From NCBI GenBank assembly GCA_965202585.1, contig CBDBBG010000090.1:1-64000 (forward strand): a stretch of 64,000 bases of DNA, read 5' to 3'. This document shows positions 14,885-59,630 of the stretch, piece after piece. The notes under the pieces were generated by a model, which saw only the letters and a list, made by a program, of their open reading frames with translations, was not told where the DNA came from and ran no database searches. Within the stretch, counting starts at the first letter, position 1. Each line of letters opens with the position of its first letter. A program made the translations under genes and the position numbers. The DNA is from Thalia democratica. Its lineage: Eukaryota.

Positions 14885-15490
14885 GGCCATATGAGGAGGT
14901 ATGCCATTTTTTTACAAGTTGATTTTATTTTATAAAGTTTTTAATAAGTTTCAAATTGCTTTTTACGATTTTGAAAATTTCAAAAATTTTTGAGATATGA
15001 CCAGTTAAATTTTCAAATTTGGGGCTGTATAACAGGTTCATCATGGTTAGGGAAAACTAAAATAGCAAAATCAGATTATTTTATTCAAAATCTATCTGCT
15101 TAATTTTTCAAGTAATCTTCTTCAAACTTTAACAGTATAATCTTTATACAATAACAAAATGAGTTATGAAGGGTTTTGAAAAATTTTGAGTTAAAGTACT
15201 TTGTTATTAAAAATAAAAAGATTTTTTATTTATTTTCTTTTTTTAATTTTATTTTTCAAAATTATAAAAATTCCTTAATTACAATTTTTTTTATACAAGG
15301 AACATTTCCTGAAAATTTGAAGAAATGGCTTGAAAAATAAAGGAGATAGATTTGTAGTGACTTTTCAAAGTTCTGAGAAAATTGGCCAACAAAATTTGGG
15401 TCCATACACATTTGTATCAAATACTTTTTACAAAAATAACAATATATCTTAAGTTGAACTAGATTTTTCAATTCTGTAAAAACTGGATTG
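14885..15490. mobile_element. Diverged partial copy of TTAA-family palindromic MITE
   Basis: ttaa|GGCCATATGAGGAGG start; shared aagttgattt, aaattgctttttac and aaggaacatttcctgaaa motifs; right terminus decayed. Confidence 0.6.
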
Positions 15491-15755
15491 TAGTTTGTAC
15501 TTATAGCTTAAATATAAAAGCCAAAGTTATTTTTTGTACAAAAAAAAAAAATTAAATAGTAAAAAAATATTTTTTTTGAATGATAGATATTCTTTATCTA
15601 ATAAATATATAAATTTTACATAATCTTTTTTTATCAAAGGTTTTGATTAAATTTTTTCAATTTCAATTTTAAGGTATTTTTAAGTATGAGAAGTGTAAAC
15701 AATCCAAACTATGATCATTGTATTGTTTTTAAAAAAGCCCTGTTAATAAAGTTAT

Positions 15756-15851
15756 GTGGCCTGATGGCATGCCGGTCCAAATGACCACATTAAAAACTCT
15801 CTGAGTTGACGTTGCAGGTTTGAAACCCATGGCCAACACATACAAAAAAAA
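15756..15851 (+). other. Possible tRNA-derived SINE head (degenerate pol III A and B boxes)
   Basis: GTGGCCTGATGG (A-box-like) at 15756, GGTTTGAAACCC (B-box-like) at 15817-15828, short A-run near 15844-15851. No cloverleaf recovered; single copy in window. Confidence 0.3.
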
Positions 15852-15975
15852 GAAACACACCATTAACTAGTAAACACTACTTGAGCAACATTTTAAGTTT
15901 TTAATTAATGTTACTAGGAAAAAAGTGAGATAAGTACCCCCAGAAAACGTTTATCGTTGCAAGGGGTAGAGTTTG

Positions 15976-18133
15976 ATGGATGTCTTTTTTGACCAACTTT
16001 TTGACCAACTTTTGCTAATTTGTTGAATATCAAAGCGAAATTCTGACCAACTTTTAAAATATTCAACTTCATAAGGAACGACTAAAATTTTTAAACAAAC
16101 TTAGTAAAAGGGTTGGTATTTGAAAATAACCTGTAATTGCGCCTACTAGCGGTTATTTTGTTACAACTTAAAATAAAAAAATATAACAAAAATAAAGAAA
16201 AATATAATAATACTAATAATAATAATAAACTTAAAACAAGGGTATAAAAATTATTATTATGCTTTAAAATTTCATACAAAGCTTTGGATCGTACTCAAAA
16301 GTTGCACATTGAAAAAATAATTTGAAAATTTAAGGGTCGGTCGGACCCCATGAAATTTGTAACATAAAATAAAGGTACTAAACGTTATTGTTTTGCTTTG
16401 AAATTTTAAACACAGCTTTAGATCGTACTCAAAAATTGTACGTTGGAAAAATAATTGGAAAATTTGGGGTCAACCGGACCCCGTGAAATTTTGAAAATTG
16501 AATTAAGGTACAAGACATTAGTTTTTTAGTTTGAAATTTTGTACACAGTTTTGGATGGTACTTAACAATAGTACGTCGAAAAAAAATTTAAAAAATTTGG
16601 GGTCAACCGGACCCCGTGAAATTTTGAAAGCTTAATTAAGGTACAGGACGTTAGTTTTTTACTTTGTAATTTTGTACACAGTTTTGGATGGTACTCAACA
16701 ATAATACGTCGAAAAAAAATTCAAAAAATTTGGGGTCAACCGGACCCCGTAAAATTTCGAATGTTAAATTAAGGTACAAGACGTTAGTCTTTAGCTTTAA
16801 TATTTTGTACACAGTTTTGGATCGTAATCAACGATAGTACGTCGAAAATATATTCAAAAAATTTGGGGTCAAACGGACCCCGTGAAATTTTGAATGTTAA
16901 GTTAATGTACAAGACGTTAGTCTTTAGCTTTAATATTTTGTACACAGTTTTGGATGGTAATCAACGATAGTACGTCGAAAATATACTCAAAAAATTTGGG
17001 GTCAACCGGACCCCAAGAAATTTTGAATGTTAAGTTAAGGTACAAGACGTTAGTCTTTAGCTTTAATATTTTGTACACAGTTTTGGATCGTAATCAACGA
17101 TAGTACGTCGAAAATATATTCAAAAAATTTGGGGTCAACCGGACCTCGTGAAATTTTGAATGTTAAGTTAAGGTACAAGACGTTAGTTTTTCGCTTTGTT
17201 ACTTTATACACAGATTCGGATCGTACTCAACGATAGTACGTCGAGATAAAAAACTCAAAAAATTTGGGTTCAAGCCGATCCCGTGAAATTTTGAAAGCTT
17301 AATTAAGGTACAGGACGTTAGTTTTTTGCATTGTAAATTTATACACAGATTTAGATCGTACTCAACAATAGTACGTCGAAAAAAATTTTAATAAATTTGG
17401 GGTCAACCGGACCCCGTGAAATTTTGAATGTTAAATTAAGATACAAGATGTTAGTCTTTAGCTTTGATATTTTGTACACAGTTTTGGATGGTACTTAACA
17501 ATAGTACGTCGAAAAAAAATTTTTTTAATTTGGGGTCAATCGGACCCCGTAAAATTTCGAATGTTAAATTAAGGTAAAAGACGTTAGTCTTTAGCTTTGA
17601 TATTTTGTACACAGTTTTGGATCGTAATCAACGATAGTACGTCGAAAATATATTCAAAAAATTTGGGGTCAACCGGACCCCGTGAAATTTTGAATGTTAA
17701 GTTAAGGTACAAGACGTTAGTCTTTAGCTTTTATATTTTGTACACAGTTTTGGATCGTAATCAACGATAGTTCGTCGAAAAAAAATTTAATAAATTTGGG
17801 GTCAACCGGACCCCGTGAAATTTTGAATGTTAAATTAAGGTACAATATGTTAGTCTTTAGCTTTGTAATTTTATACACAGTTTTGGATCGTAATCAACGA
17901 TAGTACGTTGAAAAAAAAATCAAAAAATTTGGGGTCAACCGGACCCCGTGAAATTACGAATGTTAAGTTAAGGTACAAGACGTTAGTCTTTAGCTTTGAT
18001 ATTTTGTACTGAGTTTTGGATGGTACTTAACAATAGTACGTCGAAAAAAAATTTAATAAATTTGGGGTCAATCGGACCCCGTAAAGTTTCGAATGTTAAA
18101 TTAAGGTACAAGACGTTAGTCTTTAGCTTTGAT
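15976..18133 (+). repeat. Left foldback arm: about 300-bp unique terminus plus 14 x 133-bp tandem units
   Basis: Core GGGGTC-N5-GACCCC recurs at 16334, 16466, 16599, 16732, 16865, 16998, 17131, 17266, 17399, 17532, 17665, 17798, 17931 and 18064. Confidence 0.95.
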
Positions 18134-18869
18134 AGCTTTGAAGTACAAAATTTTTAGTCCTACTTAAATAACTTAAAAAAGCTCCAGCTTTAAACTCTAA
18201 AAACTAAATATATCATTAATTTAGTTCAAAATATACATTAGTTACGTCACAATGTTAGAAACAATGTTACTCAAAAATTTTCTATGCAAGTTTAAAGTAG
18301 TTAAATTAATTCCAGCTAAATAGCAATTTATCAAGTTATAAATTTAATTCAAATACCTTTGTTCATGGTAGTATGTAAGACATTTATTTATTTTTTATTT
18401 ATTACTTAAGCTGATTGTATTTTAAAATCTAGTAGTTTTAACTTTAATACCTAAGTTAAAGTTTTTAATTTATTTAGTAGTTCTAGTACATACAATTTTC
18501 ATGTTTAAGACTCTAAACTTTCTGAATATCATAAGTTACAATTTCTAATTTACCTATGTTTTTTTTTAAATTGTTTTTAACTTAAAGAAGCAGGATTTGA
18601 TTAATTTAATTATAATTAATTGAATAATATTATTGAATATATTTATGATATAATTTTTGATTGTTCATTTTTTTTTTTGCTAATTTTTCAAATTAGGCAG
18701 ATTCTTGTTGTGAGAGACAATTAGCTACATTTTATTAATAATATGATACTATGTTCTGCTTTTAGATAAAATCTATGAGAGATACTTGTTGCAAAAGTAT
18801 ATCTAATAAACAAGATTTATTTTCAGCATAGTAAATTAATAAAACTTATTATGAATATTGTTTTTCAAA

Positions 18870-19060
18870 GTAACAAAAACTTTGTTAGTGCTGCCACAGA
18901 AAGTGGTTTTTTTAAAGAAGTGGATAACAATTTACACAGAGCTTGTATGTTAATATCAAAAAAAGCAGCTCCCCGAGCAAATAAGGACAGACATAAAAGA
19001 AACTGTTTAAGACTAAAGAGGTATTGGAACACGTATAAAAACGAGATACAACAAAAATAT
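18870..19060 (+). CDS. Candidate exon of the element's loop gene (basic, helical; unknown function)
   Basis: Open frame NKNFVSAATESGFFKEVDNNLHRACMLISKKAAPRANKDRHKRNCLRLKRYWNTYKNEIQQKY ending at donor gtaagt (19061). Linkage to neighbouring short exons not resolved. Confidence 0.5.
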
Positions 19061-19820
19061 GTAAGTACAATTACTTAGTATAGTTTTATAAGTTTTGTAG
19101 TAGTTTAATTTAAAGTAATGAGTTTTTGTTTATTCTTTAAACTTTCAATGTTTTAGAGTTTAAGTAATAGTTATTGTTTCAATGTTGTAAATGAGAAAAT
19201 AGACAATAATAGCTAACATTTAAAGTTAAATAACATAACACAGCTTAATTTTTGCAGAGAAGTAGCAGTATTAATAAAAGTGATTCTAGTAAGGTTAGTG
19301 TGATAAAACAGTTATTTTTTACTTAGAGCTAAATTTTATGAGACTTTCCTTACATATAAAACCATGATAAAACAAAGCTTTCTAAACGTGGTGTTATAAC
19401 AATTTCTTAGTAAAGGAAACTATTATTTGTTTATCTACTTTTACAACCTCTAGTATAAGTTAACTTCATTTTTCAGAAAAAAAGCCCTTGTAGTTCTACA
19501 TTTTTTACAGACCAAAGAGACAATTTATATGATATTACTTTTCTATATAATAGTGATATTCGTAAAATTTTGTTAACATAGTCAGCCAGTTTTTAGAAAT
19601 GACTTATTATAACCAGGTAGGTACAGTTTGCAGAGAGAAAGAAATTACAGAACTGAGATCAGGGCAAGGTACTGGTAAGAAATGATTTATTGTGTTTATT
19701 GTTAGAAGTGTTTTTTTAAAAGTTTAATAGATTGGAAAATATAAAATAACATTTGTTTTTAATTAGAAAAATGAAAACTTGAACTTATGCCTTTGATTTT
19801 AAAGTCATGTTTAACATAGT

Positions 19821-20553
19821 ACAATCAGCAGTGGAAAAAGAAGTACAACCAGCTATCAATGGTTGCTTAGTTCATGGAGAAACATCACCATCAGTTCATG
19901 AAGAAATACGACTATCAGTTCATGAAGAAATACCACTATCAGTTCATGAAGAAGTATCACCACCAGTTCATGAAGAAGTATCAACCTCAGTTCATGAAAA
20001 AACATCACCACCACTTCATGAAAGAGTATCACCATCAGTTCATGAAAGAGTATCACCATCAGTTCATGAAGAAGTACCACTATCAGTTCATGAAGAAGTA
20101 TCACTGTCAGTTCACGAAGAAGTATCACCCTCAGTTCATGAAGAAGTATCACCCTCAGTTCATGAAGAAGTATCACTGTCAGTTCATGAAGAAGTATCAC
20201 TGTCAGTTCATGAAGAAGTATCACCACCAGTTCATGAAGAAGTAACACTGTCAGTTCATGAAGAAGTATCACCACCAGTTCATGAAGAAGTATCACTATC
20301 AGTTCATGAAGAAGTGTCACCATCGGTTCATGAAGAAGTATCACCATCGGTTCATGAAGAAGTATCACCATCGGTTCATGAAGAAGTATCACCATCAGTT
20401 CATGAAGAAGTATCACCATCAGTTCATGAAGAAGTATCACCCTCAGTTCATGAAGAAGTATCACCACCACTTCATGAAAGAGTATCACCATCAGTTCATG
20501 AAGAAGTATCACCCTCAGTTCATAATAACAACACAGTAGCTTCATATTTAAAA
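19821..20553 (+). CDS. Exon encoding about 26 tandem SVHEEVS(P/L) octapeptides (loop gene of the foldback element)
   Basis: Acceptor ttaacatag (19820), frame VQSAVEKEVQP..(SVHEEVSP)n..NNNTVASYLK, donor gttagt at 20554 (phase 0); preceded by a 41-nt phase-compatible exon ending at a gtaaga donor near 19673. Confidence 0.7.
19891..20523 (+). repeat. 24-bp minisatellite TCAGTTCATGAAGAAGTATCACCA (about 26 copies)
   Basis: Direct reading of the 24-bp period; variants at the last two codons. Confidence 0.97.
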
Positions 20554-20727
20554 GTTAGTGAGTCGTTGAATAAAATGAATAGTTGCTAATATTGATTAAA
20601 ATTATTAAAGTACTACAACAAATAAGGTTTTTTTTTACTGTACTGTCTTACTGATAGTGACTTATTTTTTTATAGATTATTGCAAATAAAGATAAAGAAG
20701 TTGAAAACTAAAAAATAAGTTGAAACA

Positions 20728-22227
20728 ATCAAATCTAAAGACTAACATATTGTACCTTAATTTAACATTCAAAATTTCACGGGGTCCGGTTGACCCCAAA
20801 CTTATTGAATTTTTTTTCGACGTACTATTGTTGAGTACGATCTAAATCTGTGTATAAATTTACAATGCAAAAAACTAACGTCCTGTACCTTAATTAAGCT
20901 TTCAAAATTTCACGGGGTCGGCTTAAACCCAAATTTTTTGAATTTTTTTTCGACGTACTATCGTTGAGTACGATCCGAATCTGAGTATAAAATATAAAAG
21001 CTAAAGACTAACGATTTGTACCTTAACTTAACATTCAAAATTTCTTGGGGTCCGGTTGACCCCAAATTTTTCGAGTATATTTTCGACGTACTATCGTTGA
21101 TTACGATCCAAAACTGTGTACAAAATATAAAAGCTAAAGACTAACGTCTTGTACCTTAACTTAACATTCAAAATTTCACGGGTACCGGTTGACCCCAAAT
21201 TTTTTGAATATATTTTCGACGTACTATCGTTTGATTACGATCCAAAACTGTGTACAAAATATAAAAGCTAAAGACTAACGTCTTGTACCTTAACTTAACA
21301 TTCAAAATTTCACGGGTACCGGTTGACCCCAATTTTTTTGAATATATTTTCGACGTACTATCATTGATTACGATCCAAAACTGTGTACAAAATATAAAAG
21401 CTAAAGAATAACGTCTTGTACCTTAACTTAACATTCAAAATTTCACGGGTACCGGTTGACCCCAAATTTTTTGAATATATTTTCGACGTACTATCGTTGA
21501 TTACGATCCAAAACTGTGTACAAAATATCAAAGCTTTAGACTAACGTCTTGTACCTTAATTTAACATTCGAAATTTTACGGGGTCCGGTTGACCCCAAAT
21601 TTTTTGAATTTTTTTTGACGTACTATTGTTGAGTACCATCCAAAACTGTGTACAAAATTACAAAGTAAAAAACTAACGTCCTGTACCTTAATTAAGCTTT
21701 CAAAATTTCACGGGGTCCGGTTGACCCCAAATTTTTTGAATTTTTTTTTCGACGTACTATCGTTGAGTATGATCCGAATCTGAGTATAAAATATAAAAGC
21801 TAAAGACTAACGTCTTGTACCTTAACTTAACATTCAAAATTTCACGGGGTCCGGTTGACCCCAAATTTTTTGAATATTTTTTCGACGTACTATCGTTGAG
21901 TACGATCCGAATCTGAGTATAAAATATAAAAGCTAAAGACTAACGTCTTGTACCTTAACTTAACATTCAAAATTTCTTGGGGTCCGGTTGACCCCAAATT
22001 TTTCGAGTATATTTTCGACGTACTATCGTTGATTACGATCCAAAACTGTGTACAAAATATTAAAGCTAAAGACTAACGTCTTGTACCTTAACTTAATATT
22101 CAAAATTTCACGGGGTCCGGTTGACCCCAAATTTTTTGAATATATTTTCGACGTACTATCGTTGATTACGATCCAAAACTGTGTACAAAATATCAAAGCT
22201 AAAGACTAACGTCTTGTACCTTAATTT
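20728..22227 (-). repeat. Internal inverted array of 11 x 133-bp units (inner part of the right foldback arm)
   Basis: Core GGGG(T/A)CCGGTTGACCCC at 20781, 20914, 21047, 21180, 21314, 21447, 21580, 21712, 21846, 21979 and 22112; reverse complement of the left-arm units. Confidence 0.95.
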
Positions 22228-22416
22228 ATATCCAAAATTTAATATCCAAAATCACCAGTCAATACATCAGCTTCTTATTTAAAAGTTATTAAGACATTGA
22301 TTTCTTGTTAATTGCACCAAAAATTAGTTGCTAAAATTAATTTAAGTTTATAAGGTAGTTTAACAAATGTCATTTTTAATTTTTTGTTTCAATGATAATG
22401 ACTTATTTTTTCATAG

Positions 22417-25400
22417 ATCATTGAGAACAAAGATAAAGAAATTGAAAAACTTGAAAAATTGGGTGAACATTTAAAAAGTATTAACCGCAGTTTAGTCAAA
22501 ACGGTTTGTTAATTAAACATAAAACTGTTACAAAAGTTTCTATATCAAATATAATTTAGTTACAGTTTATAAAAAACAAAATAAAACTTTATATACGTTA
22601 AAATGTAGTCAAATAAACTTAATTTCAGGATGAAAAAAAAAACCAACGTAATGTAGAGCTTAGCAAAAAAAATTCTATATTAGAGATAAAGTTGGCAGAG
22701 CTGAAAAAAAAATTTTACAAAGTTGCAAATGAACGGTGTAGTTGTCAGTGTCTTTGTAAATTATAACTAAAGAAAAACATTTTACTTAAGAAAAATTAGT
22801 TTGACTAAAACTATTAAGAAAAATATAATATCTTTAGGAATTTAGTGGACATTTATAACATATACAGATAAACAGTCAAAAACTAGAACATTTAATGTTA
22901 TTTATTGTATTAAATAAACTTAATTTCAGTCTAAAAAACAAAGTGAGTTGAAAACAAAGCGCAACGAAGAACTTACTAGGAAAAATTTATCTTTAAAGAA
23001 AAAGTTTGCAGAGCTGGAAAATAGATGTTTTACTTTGAAAAAGAAGGGTGTCCATGTTAGTTAAACTTCGCCTTTATACCTAAAAAGTAGTATACAAAAT
23101 CAAGAACTTACACAAAAACAAATCTGTTTTACAGTTCAGCGAATCAAACTTACATGAAAGCGAAGAAGAGTTTACAACAACAATTGTTTGTAACGCCAAT
23201 GTTGAGCCAAAAAAAGTTAGTTTTAATTAAAAATGTTATGTTATCTCATATTAGTTTTGTAAAATTACTGAAATTGATTGATTATTTACAAATTTTATAA
23301 ATAAACTTTATCAAATACAAACTTATAGTGCTACAAAGAAAAAGTTAAAATCACGGAGAAAGAATGGTTAAGTATTTTCAATAATAATAAGTTGGTTGTA
23401 GACAAAAAAAAAGATAAATACAAAATGATAAAAACTGATGGAGTAGAGGTTTGTTTTTGTAAAAGATGATGGTAACTGTATAAATTATAACTACTTAAAG
23501 TAAAGTTCTTTTTACGAAGCAGTAGCAGCTTGCTTTTACAAACTTGTAGCAGTAACGTCTAAGTTACTTTTAAAAATAAAAAACTTAAAATAGTAGATTT
23601 AAATAGTAGAAGATTGAAATAGTAGAACAAAACATTTGGTTGTTAGTTTGAACTTTTTCACATGAGTTAAACGTGTTTTTCAAAAATAAATGCTTAAAAT
23701 TCTACTTGCTATGAATTTCAAACCCTAAAATTATAAAGATTGTTAGAAGAAAAATTGCTGAAATTATAAAGCCATGCGTAAAAAACCGTCTAAGACACTG
23801 TTATTTCGTATTCAATGGAAATTATTTCCGCATGATATTCCATTGCACAACTACAAAAGAATGTAAAGTTGTATGGACAGTTTGTGTTTATAAGACGGAA
23901 ATAGTCGTTGAAAGGTCGAAAACTCCTTATCACGATGAAGATCTAGGTGCTTCAATACCAAGATTAACAAAAAAAGTTAAAGGTAAATAGTTCTTAAATT
24001 CTTACAATTTTTTTTTAAATCTTTATATTTTAAACAACCTAACATACAGAAAAAATAGCTGAGTTACTAGATGAAAACGACAGCATAGATTATGTTACAA
24101 GGACAATATCAAACAGATGTAATATTGAAAAGTATTCTGAAGGTTTGTAAAATATAAGCAACTTTTTTTAAAACTAATGCTTGTACCCATAATGTTTAAA
24201 ACATAGTTTTTGTAAATTAATAATGACAAACATATTAAGTTGTTTAGATTTAAATTGTTAACAAAATATTTTTATAGGAAATTGTTCTGGTATGTACACA
24301 AATAAACAAGTAAGAAACGCTAAATACTGCATAAAACAAAAAAGGAAAGAAAATGAGCTGAATTACATAGAAAAAATTGCAGAAGTTAAAAAGAACTTTC
24401 ATTAAAATACAACAAAAACAAAGTAAGTTTAGTTAAAAATATAGAACAAACTGTACATTTATAACAAAACTATATTTAGATTGTAAAAGGAGTAATCCAA
24501 GAGTTTGCTATTTTTCCGTTTCGAATCATATTTCATGAAGAAAATGATTTAAGAATTTTAAAACAAAAACTACGGAAAAAGCCAGAGTCGGTACTGTGCA
24601 TCGACTCAACTTATGGCTTTTTCGATCAAATAGAAAGTCAAAATGTCTACTATACAGTAGCATTAATTCGAGGTTACTTTATTGTTTTTTTAAACTGTAA
24701 TATCAATTAAGAAAAAATCTGAACAATCTGTTTTTATAAAGGAAACGACGGTGAAATATTAAAAAAGTTTAAAACACACAACCACCCACCTTTAACAGTG
24801 TCGAGCATGATCTCAACCAACCTCGACAGAACATCATACAAGCAGTGGCTGGCTGTATTAAAAAGAGATATGGAAAGACTAAAAAGTGAGAGTAAAAAAA
24901 TAGTTGATAATACTGTTAACAGTTAAAATTCATTAAACAACTTTTAGGTAAGGAAGTGAAAAGGGTAGAATGCGATTGTAGCTACCCTATACTTCACGCA
25001 GTGTGTGAGCAATTCAATGGCACCACGCTAGACCTATACCTGAAACTATGCTACATGATTTTGCATAGTGATGGTAAGTCTTTAGGGTTAATTTGTGTGA
25101 CTATTTTGTTAAGTAACAAATTTTATTTTTTAGAAAAACAACTTCTGTTTGATTCGTATATGAAATGTGCTGTTCATGTTTGCGGTGCGCACAACATGAA
25201 CAGCATGAAACGGTTCTTTACAAGACATGAGGTTGAAGATAGCGAAGTGAAAACCTTCCTTATGACCATATTTTGTCGTATTCTAACATGTAAAGAGTAT
25301 GACACAATAAAATATATATTCGAAAAAGTTTGTATATTGACTACTAGTGAAAGTGAGTTTTTTTTTTTTTACAATTTATATTTGATAAGGAAATATTCAC

Positions 25401-28177
25401 TCAAAGTTTTTGAACTTTATTTAAAATAATTTATTTTAGGATGGACAAAGGAAGCTAAAAATAGTTTTTTTATTTTAAACGGATTTTGCGAAAAAAGGTG
25501 AGACTTTGTAAACTTTAACATATAATTGTGACTTAAGTTGTAAAAATTTTCTTTATTGAATTCTAATGTTTAAAATACAATTTAGCTCAACAGAAGAAGA
25601 TGTTGATGAGATCGTCAACAACTTTCTTAAAAAAAAGGACAGAAATACAGACACTGATAGCAGGGATAACAACGTTTACAAAGGATCTCCGTTTACCACA
25701 GATTTTAAAGTTTGTAAGATTTTTTTGTTTTTGTTACGTACGTTTTGTATAACATTGTAATAATGTTTATTTATTTTTTATAGGACACACTTGAGAAGGC
25801 TCAACAAAAAAATAAAGCTGAAACAGCACAACAAAATTTAAAAAAAAATAAGTATCATTTATCTGCTTTTCCTGACTACATTATCACACAGTGGGCACCA
25901 ATTATCCCGTTTGTAACAGCAACAATTACAAGATTTATCCCGAATCAAAGTCTTTTTCAAAATAACCAAGCGGCCGAGTCTCATTTCGCCAATATGAAGA
26001 ACCACACCATGAATAGGCCTCAACTAGAGAAAGACAGTATAAAAGATTTCTCTAAAAGACGTGAGGTCTGGGAATTTGATAATTTTATTCGTTGTCTACG
26101 TGATAGAATTGAGTGAGTACTTTTAACTTTTGTAAAGCATTTATACATAACACTTATGATTAATAATACAAACTACTAACAGCTACTATCGATTGCTATA
26201 TTGTAAAAATTACAATATTGTACTGCCGAAAAATGAAAACCAAATACTAAATACAAGTGATTGTGAAGATGGAATTACGCGTTGTAAGTCTAAGCAGCAC
26301 AAGAAAGCAAAAAAAAAATCTTCTTGGTTCAACATGTCCAGAAAAGTACGTTTGTTTTCTTTAAACTTTCAGTTTAACATGCAACTTGTTAAAACAGTTT
26401 TATAGAGAAACTTATTACTTTATTATTTATTTAAAGACAAAATAAAAAGCTTAAATATTTTATCCTACGACCTGGTGCACCTAAAATCCTTTCGGTTAAT
26501 TAGTTGCAAACTATTTGGATACCTTTTGACATCTTGTCCAAGGACATTAAATGTTATTTTATTTTATCTTAGATATCTAAAAATTTTAATTATTCTTAGA
26601 TTGAGAACAAAAGTATTAACTCTAAATTTGATCTAAATGAGGAGTCAATCAGAATGATGAATATCCGACGTGTTAGTTTAGAGTAATTAAAAATATATAT
26701 ACAATAAGTTATTAAACATTTTTATTTTTAGCGGAACTACCTTTGGGATAAAAAGCCAAACGAAAATTTCCAAGCTTGCATCTTATCTGAAAAAGATGTT
26801 TTAAAATTAAGCCACAAAGACTTTTGCACACTAATACCAGGAAAGCGCTTTGATGAAAAAGCTTTGAATTTTTACGGAAATGTTATTAAGCCAACAAGTA
26901 AACTTGCACTGTTTTTTTTTCTGTAATGAAGAAAAATTTTCGTTATCTATAAAACAGTTACTTTCTAACAGAAGAAGTGTGTATGCTTGTAGAAAAAAAT
27001 TCCCCATTAAAATTTTGGACAGAAGAGGAATGGACAAAACTTCTGAAAGCTAAAAAAGTTTCATTCGTTTTAAAAGGACTAACTACACAACTTCTTGTAA
27101 TTAAGTTTTACTTCTCACTTATTTAATCTTAGTTTCAGTATCTTTTAGAAAAATCTTTAAAATTTATATAAGATTACAATTTTGAAACAGTTAATAGACA
27201 AAATAGAAAAAAAATGGGTTTGTATCGACGCATTCAAAAAACGAATAAAACTTGAGAAATGTGCTTATCAAATTTTACTCCATTTATCAGCAGATGCATA
27301 TAGGGAAATCAAAACTAATTTTTAATTTATAACAGAAAAAGATAAAAATGAACAAAACATACTGTTTGCTATGGTTAGACCTATTTTGCATATTGTAAAG
27401 TTATCTCTGTTTTGAAGTAGTAAATTAAGTAAAGCAAGAAAAGCTAAAAAAAAAAGATAAAGTTTCAGCAAGCTTTTGTTTCAGTTACTCGAATGCTTTT
27501 TTGACGGTAAAATAGAAGATCATTTAAGTCTTCCTGATTTTGATAACATTCGAAACAATGCTGCAATACAACTTTTGCACCTAGCTGGTTAATAACTTAT
27601 TATTTAACTTTTATCTTTTATTATTAATCAAGTTATTTATATTTATTTTTGTAGCTTAACCTATATATTAGAAATAAGTTAAGATCAATTAAAAATTAAA
27701 CTAACACAAAATGCTTAGGTCCAAACGAAGACCCTTACTGCTGGAAATGCGGATTGAAAACGGATGAAAGAGAGGACCCGAAAATAAAATGGGTAAGCAA
27801 GATACACAAACTTGTTAATTCAATAGAACTTTTATTAAACAATGATATACTCTTCGATTTTGTATTTAACAAATTGTATCTAATACAACTGAAGTTGTTA
27901 CTTTTAAAGTAAGGCAAAAAACAAATAAACTTAAAAATAGTTTAGTCATGTTATCTATTATTTGAAAATTCTTTATAACATTTATTTTAATTTTTTAGCA
28001 AATAGTAAAATAAACAAATTTTAAGCTTTAAAACTTATTTAAACATAAATTATGTCAAAATAGGTTGAATGCAGCGCTGAACTATGCAAAAGGTGGTATC
28101 ATATATCATGCCTAAATTTAAATGTACCTCCGAATGAGGACGAAGCTTTTTATTGCCCCTTGTGCTCAACAGACTAA
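22417..28177 (+). CDS. Multi-exon MULE transposase: coiled coil, WRKY/GCM-like finger, DDE core, degenerate Ulp1/C48-like domain, C-terminal PHD finger
   Basis: About 25 short exons read by eye: FHCTTTKEC-x22-H; VLCIDSTYG (D, 24603); RVECDCSYPILHAVCEQFN (D, 24974); HVCGAH (CxxH, 25181-25192); NKYHLSAFPDYIITQWAPIIPF..NNQAAESHFANMKNH (E, 25976); KDFCTLIPGKRFDEKALNFY (Ulp1-like); CWKC..W|VECSAELCKRWYHISC..FYCPLC stop 28175-28177. One apparent 1-nt shift in an A-run near 24390. Confidence 0.88.
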
Positions 28178-28400
28178 AAAAACTTCAGCTTTCGAAAAAC
28201 TATTGAAAAATTGATTAAATTCGTTTTAAATTCATTTAATTCGTTTTTGAATAAAAAAATATATAAAATGTGCGTTTATTAATAACTAAGTGAATAAATA
28301 AAATACACTGTATTTAACTACCATTGTTTTAACCAGTCAACTAATTTTAAAAACTAGTTTTTAGTAACTAATTTTCAAAAATTTTACTCTACAATTCTAA

Positions 28401-29119
28401 ACTACGATCCGAAGCTGTGTTTAAAATTTCAAAGCAAAACAATAACGTTTATTACCTTTATTTTATGTTACAAATTTCATGGGGTCCGACCGACCCCAAA
28501 TATTCAAATTATTTTTCCAACGTACAACTTTTGAGTACGATACGAAGCTGTGTTTAAAATTTCAAAGCAAAACAATAACGTTTAATACCTTTATTTTATG
28601 TTAAAAATTTCATGGGGTCCGACCGACCCCAAATTTTCAAATTATTTTTTCAACGTACAATTTTTGAGTACGATCTTAAGCTGTGTTTAAAATTTCAAAG
28701 CAAAACAATAACGTTTAATACCTTTATTTTATGTTACAAATTTCATGGGGTCCGACCGACCCCAAATTTTCCAAATATTTTTCCAACGTACAATATTTGA
28801 GTACGATCTAAAGCTTTGTATGAAATTTTAAAGCATAATAATAATTTTTATACCCTTGTTTTAAGTTTATTATTATTATTAGTATTATTATATTTTTCTT
28901 TATTTTTGTTAATTTTTTTTATTTTAAGTTGTAACAAAATAACCGCTAGTAGGCGCAATTACAGGTTATTATCAAATACCAACCCTTTTACTAAGTTTGT
29001 TTAAAAATTTTAGTCGTTCCTTATGAAGTTGAATATTTTAAAAGTTGGTCAGAATTTCGCTTTGATATTCAACAAATTAGCAAAAGTTGGTCAAAAAGTT
29101 GGTCAAAAAAGACATCCAT
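28401..29119 (-). repeat. Outer right arm: 3 x 133-bp variant units plus about 300-bp unique terminus
   Basis: GGGGTCCGACCGACCCC at 28481, 28614 and 28747; 28815-29119 is the near-exact reverse complement of 15976-16280. Confidence 0.95.
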
Positions 29120-30224
29120 GTAGAGTTTGAGACTGATGTTTTTTTACCATGAAAAAAAAAAAAAAATATTTTTTAGTCAAACATGATAAAAACATGTTTG
29201 CTTTTTTATCATCACAATTCAAAAACTTGTAGCCTGGTGGATTGGGATATTAATGAAAGATTTAAAAACTTGCAAGGTGTAAACTAAGTTATTAGAAATA
29301 ACTTGAACTGTTGTTATGACCAAAATTCAAAAAAGTGACTAAGTGACCAAACTAAAATATAAATGCAAAACGAAATTAAAGTAGCAGGTCCGAAAAGATG
29401 TATTTTGACTAATACTTCGTATAATAACTGTAATTATTAAAAAAATTGAAACGAAATTATTTTGTTTTTAATCTTAAAAAGTTTTAAATGTGCTTTAACT
29501 AAAAATTAAATAATCCATTATTGGGATAAAAAAGTTTTTGTACAGTAAATGCTTAAATTTTGTTCAAAATCTAGGGAAGTGTTATAATTTTCAATCAGAA
29601 AGAATATTTCTGTACTTCTTTAATAATTTGTTCTTAGTAAATTAAAAAACAAGGTTGCTATTGTATTGTTTCTTATAGTTATTTTTTATTTAAACAACAT
29701 TAGATAAAAGTTTTTTTTGTGAAAGCAATCTTAAACAAGTGTTTTTTTAATGTATATACTTAAAGACTTTTTAAAGATGTTAAAACTAACTAAAGAAGCT
29801 TACGATGTTATTTTGTATGATAGCGGTTACACAAACTTTAAATAAAAAAACTAAAAGGTTTTAATTAATTTAAAACAATGGTTCATAGCAACTAAAATTC
29901 TTAGTTTCAAAATTTATGTAAAAAATAATTAAAAATATAACTTTATTAGCAAATATGTTTAAAATTGATTTATTTATTCAATGCATACATTAAAAAAATC
30001 ACAATAAATCTCAAAAATTTTTTTTTACGAAAAGCAATAAAAATAACACAAAAATTTGCGACTAAAAAAGTTTAATATGCCCGTAATGTACTATTTGTAA
30101 AATTATTTTCTCGTTAAACAATAAAAGCTAAAAACTAAAAGTTTAGAATATTTTCATCGTTTTATAAAACTAAATAAATTAAAAAATTATAATTTTTTAT
30201 ATTTCTAGCTATTTATACTGTTAA

Positions 30225-59530: not shown

Positions 59531-59630
59531 NNNNNNNNNNNNNNNNNNNNNNNNNNNNNNNNNNNNNNNNNNNNNNNNNNNNNNNNNNNNNNNNNNNNNN
59601 NNNNNNNNNNNNNNNNNNNNNNNNNNNNNN
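59531..59630. other. Assembly gap (100 N)
   Basis: Run of N. Confidence 1.

Follow-up and report, generated by a model that had tools for sequence, protein, structure and literature searches.

A mobile three-array foldback element of Thalia democratica is better explained as a chimera of two related MULE families than as an element with a split right arm

The first 64,000 nucleotides of a contig from the Thalia democratica genome (GenBank assembly GCA_965202585.1, contig CBDBBG010000090.1; hereinafter the window), an AT-rich stretch with ~25% G+C, contain a transposable element of ~13 kb at positions 15976-29119. Read from left to right, it comprises a terminal inverted repeat (TIR), a long array of 133-bp tandem units, an interior segment or loop, a second, inverted array, a multi-exon transposase module, a short third array and the opposite TIR (Table 1). 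An earlier note, made from the sequence alone, had read this layout as a foldback Mutator-like element (MULE) of a single family, the right arm of which is split by the transposase module, and had proposed that recombination between the internal and terminal arrays acts as a built-in switch from the autonomous form to a symmetric non-autonomous foldback. We present evidence that the element is better explained as a Pack-TIR-like chimera between two related transposon families. Hereinafter, W denotes the copy of the element in the window, F1 its family, F2 a sister family and F1b an older relative; A and B denote the two types of 133-bp unit, which were typed against A and B reference units, with the sign in brackets giving their orientation.

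Results

A mobile element with three arrays of two unit types

In agreement with the earlier note, W is a single unit bounded by a perfect 10-bp target-site duplication (TSD), GTAGAGTTTG; further, the end motif ATGGATGTCTTTTTTGACCAAC is read at both 15976 and 29119, these being its two occurrences in the window as against zero expected by chance. The three-array description was likewise accurate, with Tandem Repeats Finder and unit typing agreeing on it. The former delimited 133-bp arrays at 16261-18134 (14.1 copies), 20731-22240 (11.4 copies, inverted) and 28403-28867 (3.5 copies, inverted), while the latter resolved the left array into one partial and one full A unit followed by 13 B(+) units, the internal array into ~11-12 B(-) units, and the right array into 3-4 A(-) units, one partial unit among them. 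The consensus A and B units differ at about a quarter of their positions. The left and internal arrays form inverted-repeat arms of ~500 nt that are 82-94% complementary, and an inverted-repeat analysis found the A units at the two ends of the element to be complementary as well. Every 133-bp unit, whether A or B, keeps the palindromic core GGGGTC-N4-GGACCCC (16448-18134, 20728-22240 and 28403-28834), which is a candidate transposase-binding site common to F1 and F2.

A search of the genome for high-identity F1 ends (801 Mb in 1833 contigs; 40 of 114 candidates scored) recovered four F1 copies, namely W, C6:58020888-58035302, C7:23293146-23307771 and one represented by an end at C2:16985568 (the prefix C marks contigs of the assembly; the F1-like fragments C8:56371997 and C71:79561 were left out of the copy comparison). 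The 10-bp TSDs of the three complete copies all differ (GTAGAGTTTG, CGATTCGTAA and CCTGGTTGGT), indicating that the composite has transposed as a unit at least three times. The order of parts across the three arrays is common to all four copies and is hence no one-off, with the unit numbers varying between them: the C6 copy displays 1 A and 11 B units, the loop, 17-18 B(-) units, the full transposase module and 12-13 A(-) units; the C7 copy has the part order of W minus W24745-28402 and plus a 5-kb insertion; and in the C2 copy W24384-28402 is deleted and the left arm truncated. The internal array ranges from 3-5 to 17-18 units among the F1 copies, which diverge from one another by 0.2-2.8%, depending on the segment. 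Taken together, these comparisons show that all four copies descend from one founder with the three-array structure, followed by at least three independent insertions, and they confirm W as a real, mobile, MULE-like foldback-type element with a family-wide layout.

The B arrays and the loop match a sister family

The F2 elements have ends reading ATGGTTAACTTTTTTGACAAAC (starting with ATGGTTAAC), which are ~82% identical to the F1 ends over the first 85 bp, and their TSDs are also 10 bp long (three F2 copies). Unit typing of the fetched F2 copies recovered B-type units on both arms and zero A units. The A units, at >=90% identity, are found genome-wide in the four F1 copies only, a single unit of 83% identity being present in an older relative. 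The loop shows a comparable affinity: its segment 18661-19800 matches the interiors of F2 elements at 98-99% identity, and W18171-20727 is collinear with F2 copies at 95-99% identity (e.g., C1:47885212-47895626), the divergence of the loop from F2 copies being 1.4-3.3%. Past the point where the internal array of W starts, this C1 copy runs on into exons whose products are 38-59% identical to those of the W transposase exons. F2 copies on C5 possess a longer run of transposase exons (38-69% protein identity to W), which is without the DDE core, and a complete transposase gene was present in none of the five F2 copies examined. Given that the loop is collinear with F2 and continuous there with F2 exons, it corresponds to the F2 upstream region, exon 1, intron 1 and the start of exon 2. 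Sequence comparison identifies the B arrays, the loop and the internal array as F2-derived. On this reading, W has its true arms in the termini and the A units, while the B(+)/B(-) pair is carried inside them as a passenger foldback.

Three junctions join the F1 and F2 parts

The leftmost junction falls in a hybrid unit starting at 16448, which is A-type through position 12 and B-type from position 24, the crossover lying in a 12-nt block, AAATTTGGGGTC, shared by A and B; this hybrid unit is identical in W, C6 and C7. At the second junction, F2 exon 2 stops after 58 nt and gives way to a B(-) unit across a 6-nt microhomology; a 30-mer spanning this join occurs genome-wide in exactly the four F1 copies. 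At the third, the B(-) array abuts an ATG-less remnant of F1's own exon 1, which is longer in the C7 and C2 copies than in W, and in W and C6 this site has been slightly altered secondarily, a 14-bp duplication being part of the alteration.

The second junction bears on the claim, made in the earlier note, that the left and internal arrays end in the same register facing the loop and hence behave as true arms. In W both B arrays do end in ...TTTGAT towards the loop; however, the internal array meets the loop at a deletion junction within an exon, marked by the ATCAAA microhomology, rather than at a native F2 arm boundary, and the native inner boundary of the F2 right arm lies in a different register.

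Table 1. Features of W and its immediate borders, with positions in the window
Feature	Position	Strand	Basis
Left TSD copy, 10 bp, GTAGAGTTTG	15966-15975		Perfect match to right copy
Left TIR of F1, begins ATGGATGTC, contains TTGACCAAC repeats	15976-16260	+	99% identical to 28835-29119, opposite strand
Remnant of F1's own left array, 1 partial and 1 full A unit	16228-16447	+	Unit typing; same pattern in C6 and C7
B(+) array, 13 units, F2 unit type	16448-18134	+	Unit typing; F2 copies have B on both arms
Left capture junction, in-register A-to-B crossover in conserved AAATTTGGGGTC core	16448-16470	+	Diagnostic positions
Loop, 5' part of F2 transposase gene region, 2.6 kb	18135-20733	+	18171-20727 collinear with F2
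F2-derived first coding exon, ATG, 249 aa, phase-0 end, donor GTTAGT	19807-20553	+	Sequence reading; homologous exon in F1b
24-bp coding minisatellite (SVHEEVSP) within F2-derived exon 1	19869-20523	+	Tandem Repeats Finder
Intron 1 of F2-derived region	20554-20675	+	Splice-site reading
Truncated F2 exon 2, cut by internal array at ATCAAA microhomology	20676-20733	+	Alignment with F2 copy and exon 2'
Internal inverted B(-) array, ~11.4 units, predicted intronic	20728-22240	-	Tandem Repeats Finder, inverted-repeat search, unit typing
F1 transposase module, multi-exon, 17 homology-supported exon segments, all open in W	22253-28402	+	Homology
Remnant of F1's own exon 1, without ATG, then donor GTTATT	22253-22284	+	Comparison with full exon of F1b
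F1 exon 2', 29 codons, phase 0, acceptor ...CATAG	22417-22503	+	Sequence reading
DDE core exons: first D near CIDSTYG, second D at VECDCS, HVCGAHNMNS, E at NQAAESHF	24480-26113	+	tblastn with 1314-aa homolog; motif alignment
C-terminal Cys/His-rich PHD-like exons	27700-27909, 28070-28168	+	Aligned to C-terminus of 1314-aa homolog
Right A(-) array, ~3.5 units, F1's own arm	28403-28834	-	A units at >=90% identity confined to F1 copies
Right TIR of F1, 285 bp	28835-29119	-	99% identical to left TIR
Right TSD copy, 10 bp, GTAGAGTTTG	29120-29129		Perfect match to left copy

Ancestral state and a proposed origin of the cassette

The ancestral condition is illuminated by F1b (C4:35262000-35282000), which is ~90% identical to W over the transposase module and in which the upstream region, the ATG, an exon 1 with a single unit, the intron and exon 2 follow one another uninterrupted by any array; the F1b 5' region shows only 67% similarity to the loop. 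Other related families in the genome, those with units of 190 and 218 bp among them, have the canonical two arrays. Since both F1b and these families are without a third array, the latter is a derived feature of the F1 lineage. A comparison of the divergence among F1 copies with that between the loop and F2 further places the capture only slightly before the F1 burst.

We consider it probable that W is a recently mobile Rehavkus-like F1 MULE whose left inner half was replaced by an F2 cassette. F1 itself has 285-bp TIRs, subterminal 133-bp units of type A and a DDE transposase gene with multiple exons. The cassette would consist of the B(+) array, the F2 upstream region, exon 1, intron 1, 58 nt of exon 2 and the inverted B(-) array, i.e., the core of a foldback-type F2 element with an internal deletion and without the F2 termini, and would have taken the place of F1's own left array and first coding exon. 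The three junctions (an in-register A-to-B crossover, the exon 2/B(-) microhomology join and the join of B(-) to the F1 exon 1 remnant) probably arose by homology- and microhomology-guided template switching within the repeat arrays; the setting may have been gap repair or a stalled replication fork, in line with what has been proposed for Pack-TIR elements.

The F1 exon 1 remnant is without a start codon, and expression of the transposase therefore probably relies on the promoter and exon 1 that derive from F2. The phase-0 donor at 20553/20554 could join the acceptor of F1 exon 2' at 22416/22417 in frame to yield a hybrid transposase, and this 20553|22417 splice would enclose the whole B(-) array in an intron of 1,863 nt; from these splice sites we infer a hybrid transposase gene in which the inverted B array sits in a 1.86-kb intron. 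More tentatively, and with doubt prevailing, this arrangement could represent a functional swap of promoter and first exon, with an mRNA spliced across a foldback-arm intron (1.5-2.3 kb in extent), and W could be an autonomous driver of F1 and F2 foldbacks alike, given that the GGGGTC-N4-GGACCCC core is common to A and B units.

Several observations weigh against this reconstruction. A free F2 donor with the same exon 2/B(-) junction is absent from the assembly, and consequently the junction could predate the capture or have formed in the course of it. A pure A/A ancestor of F1 was also not found in the genome; it is reconstructed from the A remnant on the left arm together with F1b. With respect to the gene, 1-bp indels separate W from the C6 copy at three putative exon segments, and the W transposase may not be intact; further, the native F2 acceptor at 20675/20676 lies nearer to the donor than does the acceptor of F1 exon 2'. 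This native acceptor could trap splicing into the truncated exon, with a stop inside the array.

Competing explanations

The three-array layout could instead have arisen by nesting in two steps, in which a complete non-autonomous F2 foldback inserted in the left arm of F1 and later events removed the F2 termini along with the F1 5' region. The raw material for this is at hand, in that symmetric F2 foldbacks with only the loop between their B arrays exist (e.g., C5:44784066-44793789) and nested insertions are common here, one of them being carried by the C7 copy. Nevertheless, F2 termini, F2 spacers and an internal TSD were sought in W and none remains; the lack of F2 termini and spacers indicates that W is not a simple nested insertion. 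The left junction is, moreover, an in-register homologous crossover between A and B, and nesting needs at least three events, as opposed to the one process of template switching. We hence regard this course of events as unlikely.

The single-family interpretation of the earlier note, with the transposase module splitting the right arm, built on genuine regularities: the internal and terminal arrays share their orientation and a common 133-bp register, and the left and internal arrays of W end at the same unit position. It is nonetheless very improbable, given the different unit types of the internal and terminal arrays, the derivation of the B arrays and loop from F2, and an F1b that is without an internal array. 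The proposed recombination switch fares no better, as no ~7-kb derivative lacking the transposase module was found among the scored high-identity F1 ends. The two non-autonomous copies, in C7 and C2, arose by other, independent deletions, respectively starting after W24744 and after W24383 and running into different A(-) unit positions, and both keep the loop and the internal array. There is, however, a kernel of truth in the switch idea: arrays recur as deletion end points, F2 copies included.

An assembly artefact, i.e., two repeat-rich elements collapsed or chimerically joined on a small unplaced contig, has a negligible probability, for although W lies on C99, one of the 1833 contigs, and arrays are hard to assemble, the same layout and junctions occur on three chromosome-scale contigs, the sole N run of the window (59531-59630) lies outside the element, and independent marine metagenome contigs bridge both inner junctions (20614-20764 with 0 differences and 22203-22512 with 2 differences). 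The reads available on the window were short contigs, and we used the bridging contigs alone, disregarding the reported joints, all of which had only 20-33 matching letters on the shorter side. These bridges and the shared layout exclude both a misassembly and a one-off rearrangement. The chimera of F1 with an F2 cassette therefore remains our preferred explanation.

The transposase and its homologs

The transposase alignment displays D, D, C-x2-H and E in this order, and more than 100 related transposase exons were found in the genome. One homolog is an intronless open reading frame of 1314 aa on C8 (L054:2468-6412, minus strand; C8:20943467-20947411), which aligns to W exons 23760-26101 and 28070-28168, is ~30-34% identical to the W DDE exons and carries a PHD-like finger at its C-terminus; possible identities include a domesticated transposase and a relative without introns. 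A protein from a public ENA assembly, P0018, is 87% identical to it. A Cys/His pattern is visible at the C-terminus of P0018, and the last W exons align to the corresponding region of the homolog, with the Pfam PHD models matching the C-termini of two homologs below threshold (E 0.004-0.03).

Profile searches were otherwise largely silent. The Pfam MULE domain (PF10551) matched neither the exon pieces nor three homologs including the 1314-aa one, and Pfam returned no sensible match at E up to 1 for ten exon-sized pieces. The Ulp1 domain that the earlier note had assumed for the transposase was not detected: exons 26732-27322 gave no Pfam Peptidase_C48 match with E up to 1, and a profile built from four homologs of exon 26732-26923 gave no PDB match with E up to 10. 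An Atlas feature search of the transposase recovered MULE-named clusters (best score 0.94), which we take as a lead only. A HMMER search with the 169-aa DDE exon against 1.8 billion representatives retrieved nothing but short fragments, which seem to stem from this genome or related ones, and a single protein was obtained when the 1314-aa homolog was used in a word-indexed protein search. An AlphaFold model of the DDE region of this homolog had a predicted local distance difference test score (pLDDT) of 52.8, too poor for a fold search.

The minisatellite in the first exon varies in length, with 5 to 26 SVHEEVSP motifs among copies; as F1b has a single unit, this N-terminal repeat has expanded within exon 1 of the transposase.

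Flanks, nested insertions and related arrays

The flanks of W (15400-15975 and 29120-29700) are part of a repeated segment, paralogs of which are located at C7:51.45-51.76 Mb (n=4) and on C452. A clean empty site was sought among these paralogs; they are without the element, but also without 36 bp on its left and 46 bp on its right, indicating that the insertion site is nested in another small repeat, the 47-nt end of which is found at many loci. The nested insertion in the C7 copy (L033/L034, C7:23292146-23308771) measures ~5.07 kb, lies in intron 1' at the position equivalent to window 22291 and is flanked by a possible AAGAC duplication.

Among the F2 copies on C5, those at C5:18597339-18606991, C5:18895993-18905912 and C5:19200931-19226829 (L041-L045) have their flanks swapped, the left flank of one matching the right flank of another, and the pairing of ends there may for this reason be wrong. 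The C5 copies recur at ~300-kb spacing, and a segmental duplication containing F2 elements is suggested on this contig. In a related family with 190-bp units (L048/L049, C6:17965641-17985640), the right array holds ~68 units (12.9 kb) as against ~9 on the left; this extreme asymmetry of the arms looks like a satellite-like expansion within a transposon.

Discussion

Relationship to known transposon groups

W combines traits of several described groups. MULE/MuDR elements have TSDs of 9-11 bp and long TIRs, and here the TSD is 10 bp at three F1 and three F2 copies and the TIRs are 285 bp long and 99% identical; as in foldback elements, long inverted arms of tandem repeats are able to fold back; and, as in Rehavkus, arrays are subterminal, the 133-bp arrays adjoining both termini of W. 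The 10-bp TSDs, long inverted ends and subterminal arrays fit the MULE/Rehavkus-type foldback elements (PMC6446971; bioRxiv 10.1101/2024.12.02.626372). We call W Rehavkus-like, a putative assignment judged against published descriptions. The Rehavkus group has a 9-bp TSD (Dupeyron et al., 2019; Table 1 of PMC6446971), in contrast to the 10 bp in every copy checked here. Its described layouts, including those of the Tribolium satellite study, show a pair of arrays, or a single array preceding the 3' repeat (PMC6446971; bioRxiv 10.1101/2024.12.02.626372), whereas W has three arrays of two unit types. Unlike Rehavkus, the transposase gene of W has many introns, and the host is a marine animal rather than an arthropod or annelid.

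Abortive gap repair yields internally deleted non-autonomous derivatives of elements such as Ac/Ds, P and Mu. The C7 and C2 copies and several F2 copies resemble these in being internally deleted, as does the exon 2/B(-) join in its short microhomology; in F1 and F2, however, the deletion end points fall repeatedly within the arrays. The Drosophila FB/FB-NOF elements, Galileo and Tetris similarly have inverted arms of tandem repeats, the number of which varies and the arrays of which are hot spots of rearrangement (PMC4079207). These have been described with two symmetric arms, in contrast to W, where a second, internal arm pair from another family lies inside the true arms.

The closest parallel for the chimera itself is with Ssk-FB4 of Drosophila melanogaster and the FoSTeST model, wherein template switching in repetitive foldback arms generates multicopy chimeras with distinct TSDs (PMC8277862). 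In both cases foreign DNA has been captured between the ends of a foldback element with repetitive arms, a single chimeric structure is found with distinct 9-10-bp TSDs, and there is microhomology at the breakpoints (PMC8277862). Like Pack-TIR and Pack-MULE elements, F1 moves foreign DNA between its ends, with the F2 cassette present in all four copies, three of them with distinct TSDs. It differs from these in having captured not a host gene but the core of a sister transposon (two arrays, a promoter and a first exon), and in that its own first exon was replaced in the capture, with the remainder of its transposase gene retained.

Implications

The F1 family thus appears to offer a clean natural case in which template switching between related transposon families was favoured by repeat-rich foldback arms and yielded a product that remains mobile with a swapped 5' gene region. 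The layout that looks designed would then be a historical accident, which corrects the idea of a built-in switch between autonomous and non-autonomous forms. For annotation, a simple model with two arms is unsuitable for F1. Should the hybrid transcript exist, it would further imply that a long inverted repeat can be tolerated inside an intron, and that a transposase gene may outlive the loss of its own exon 1 by borrowing that of a sister family.

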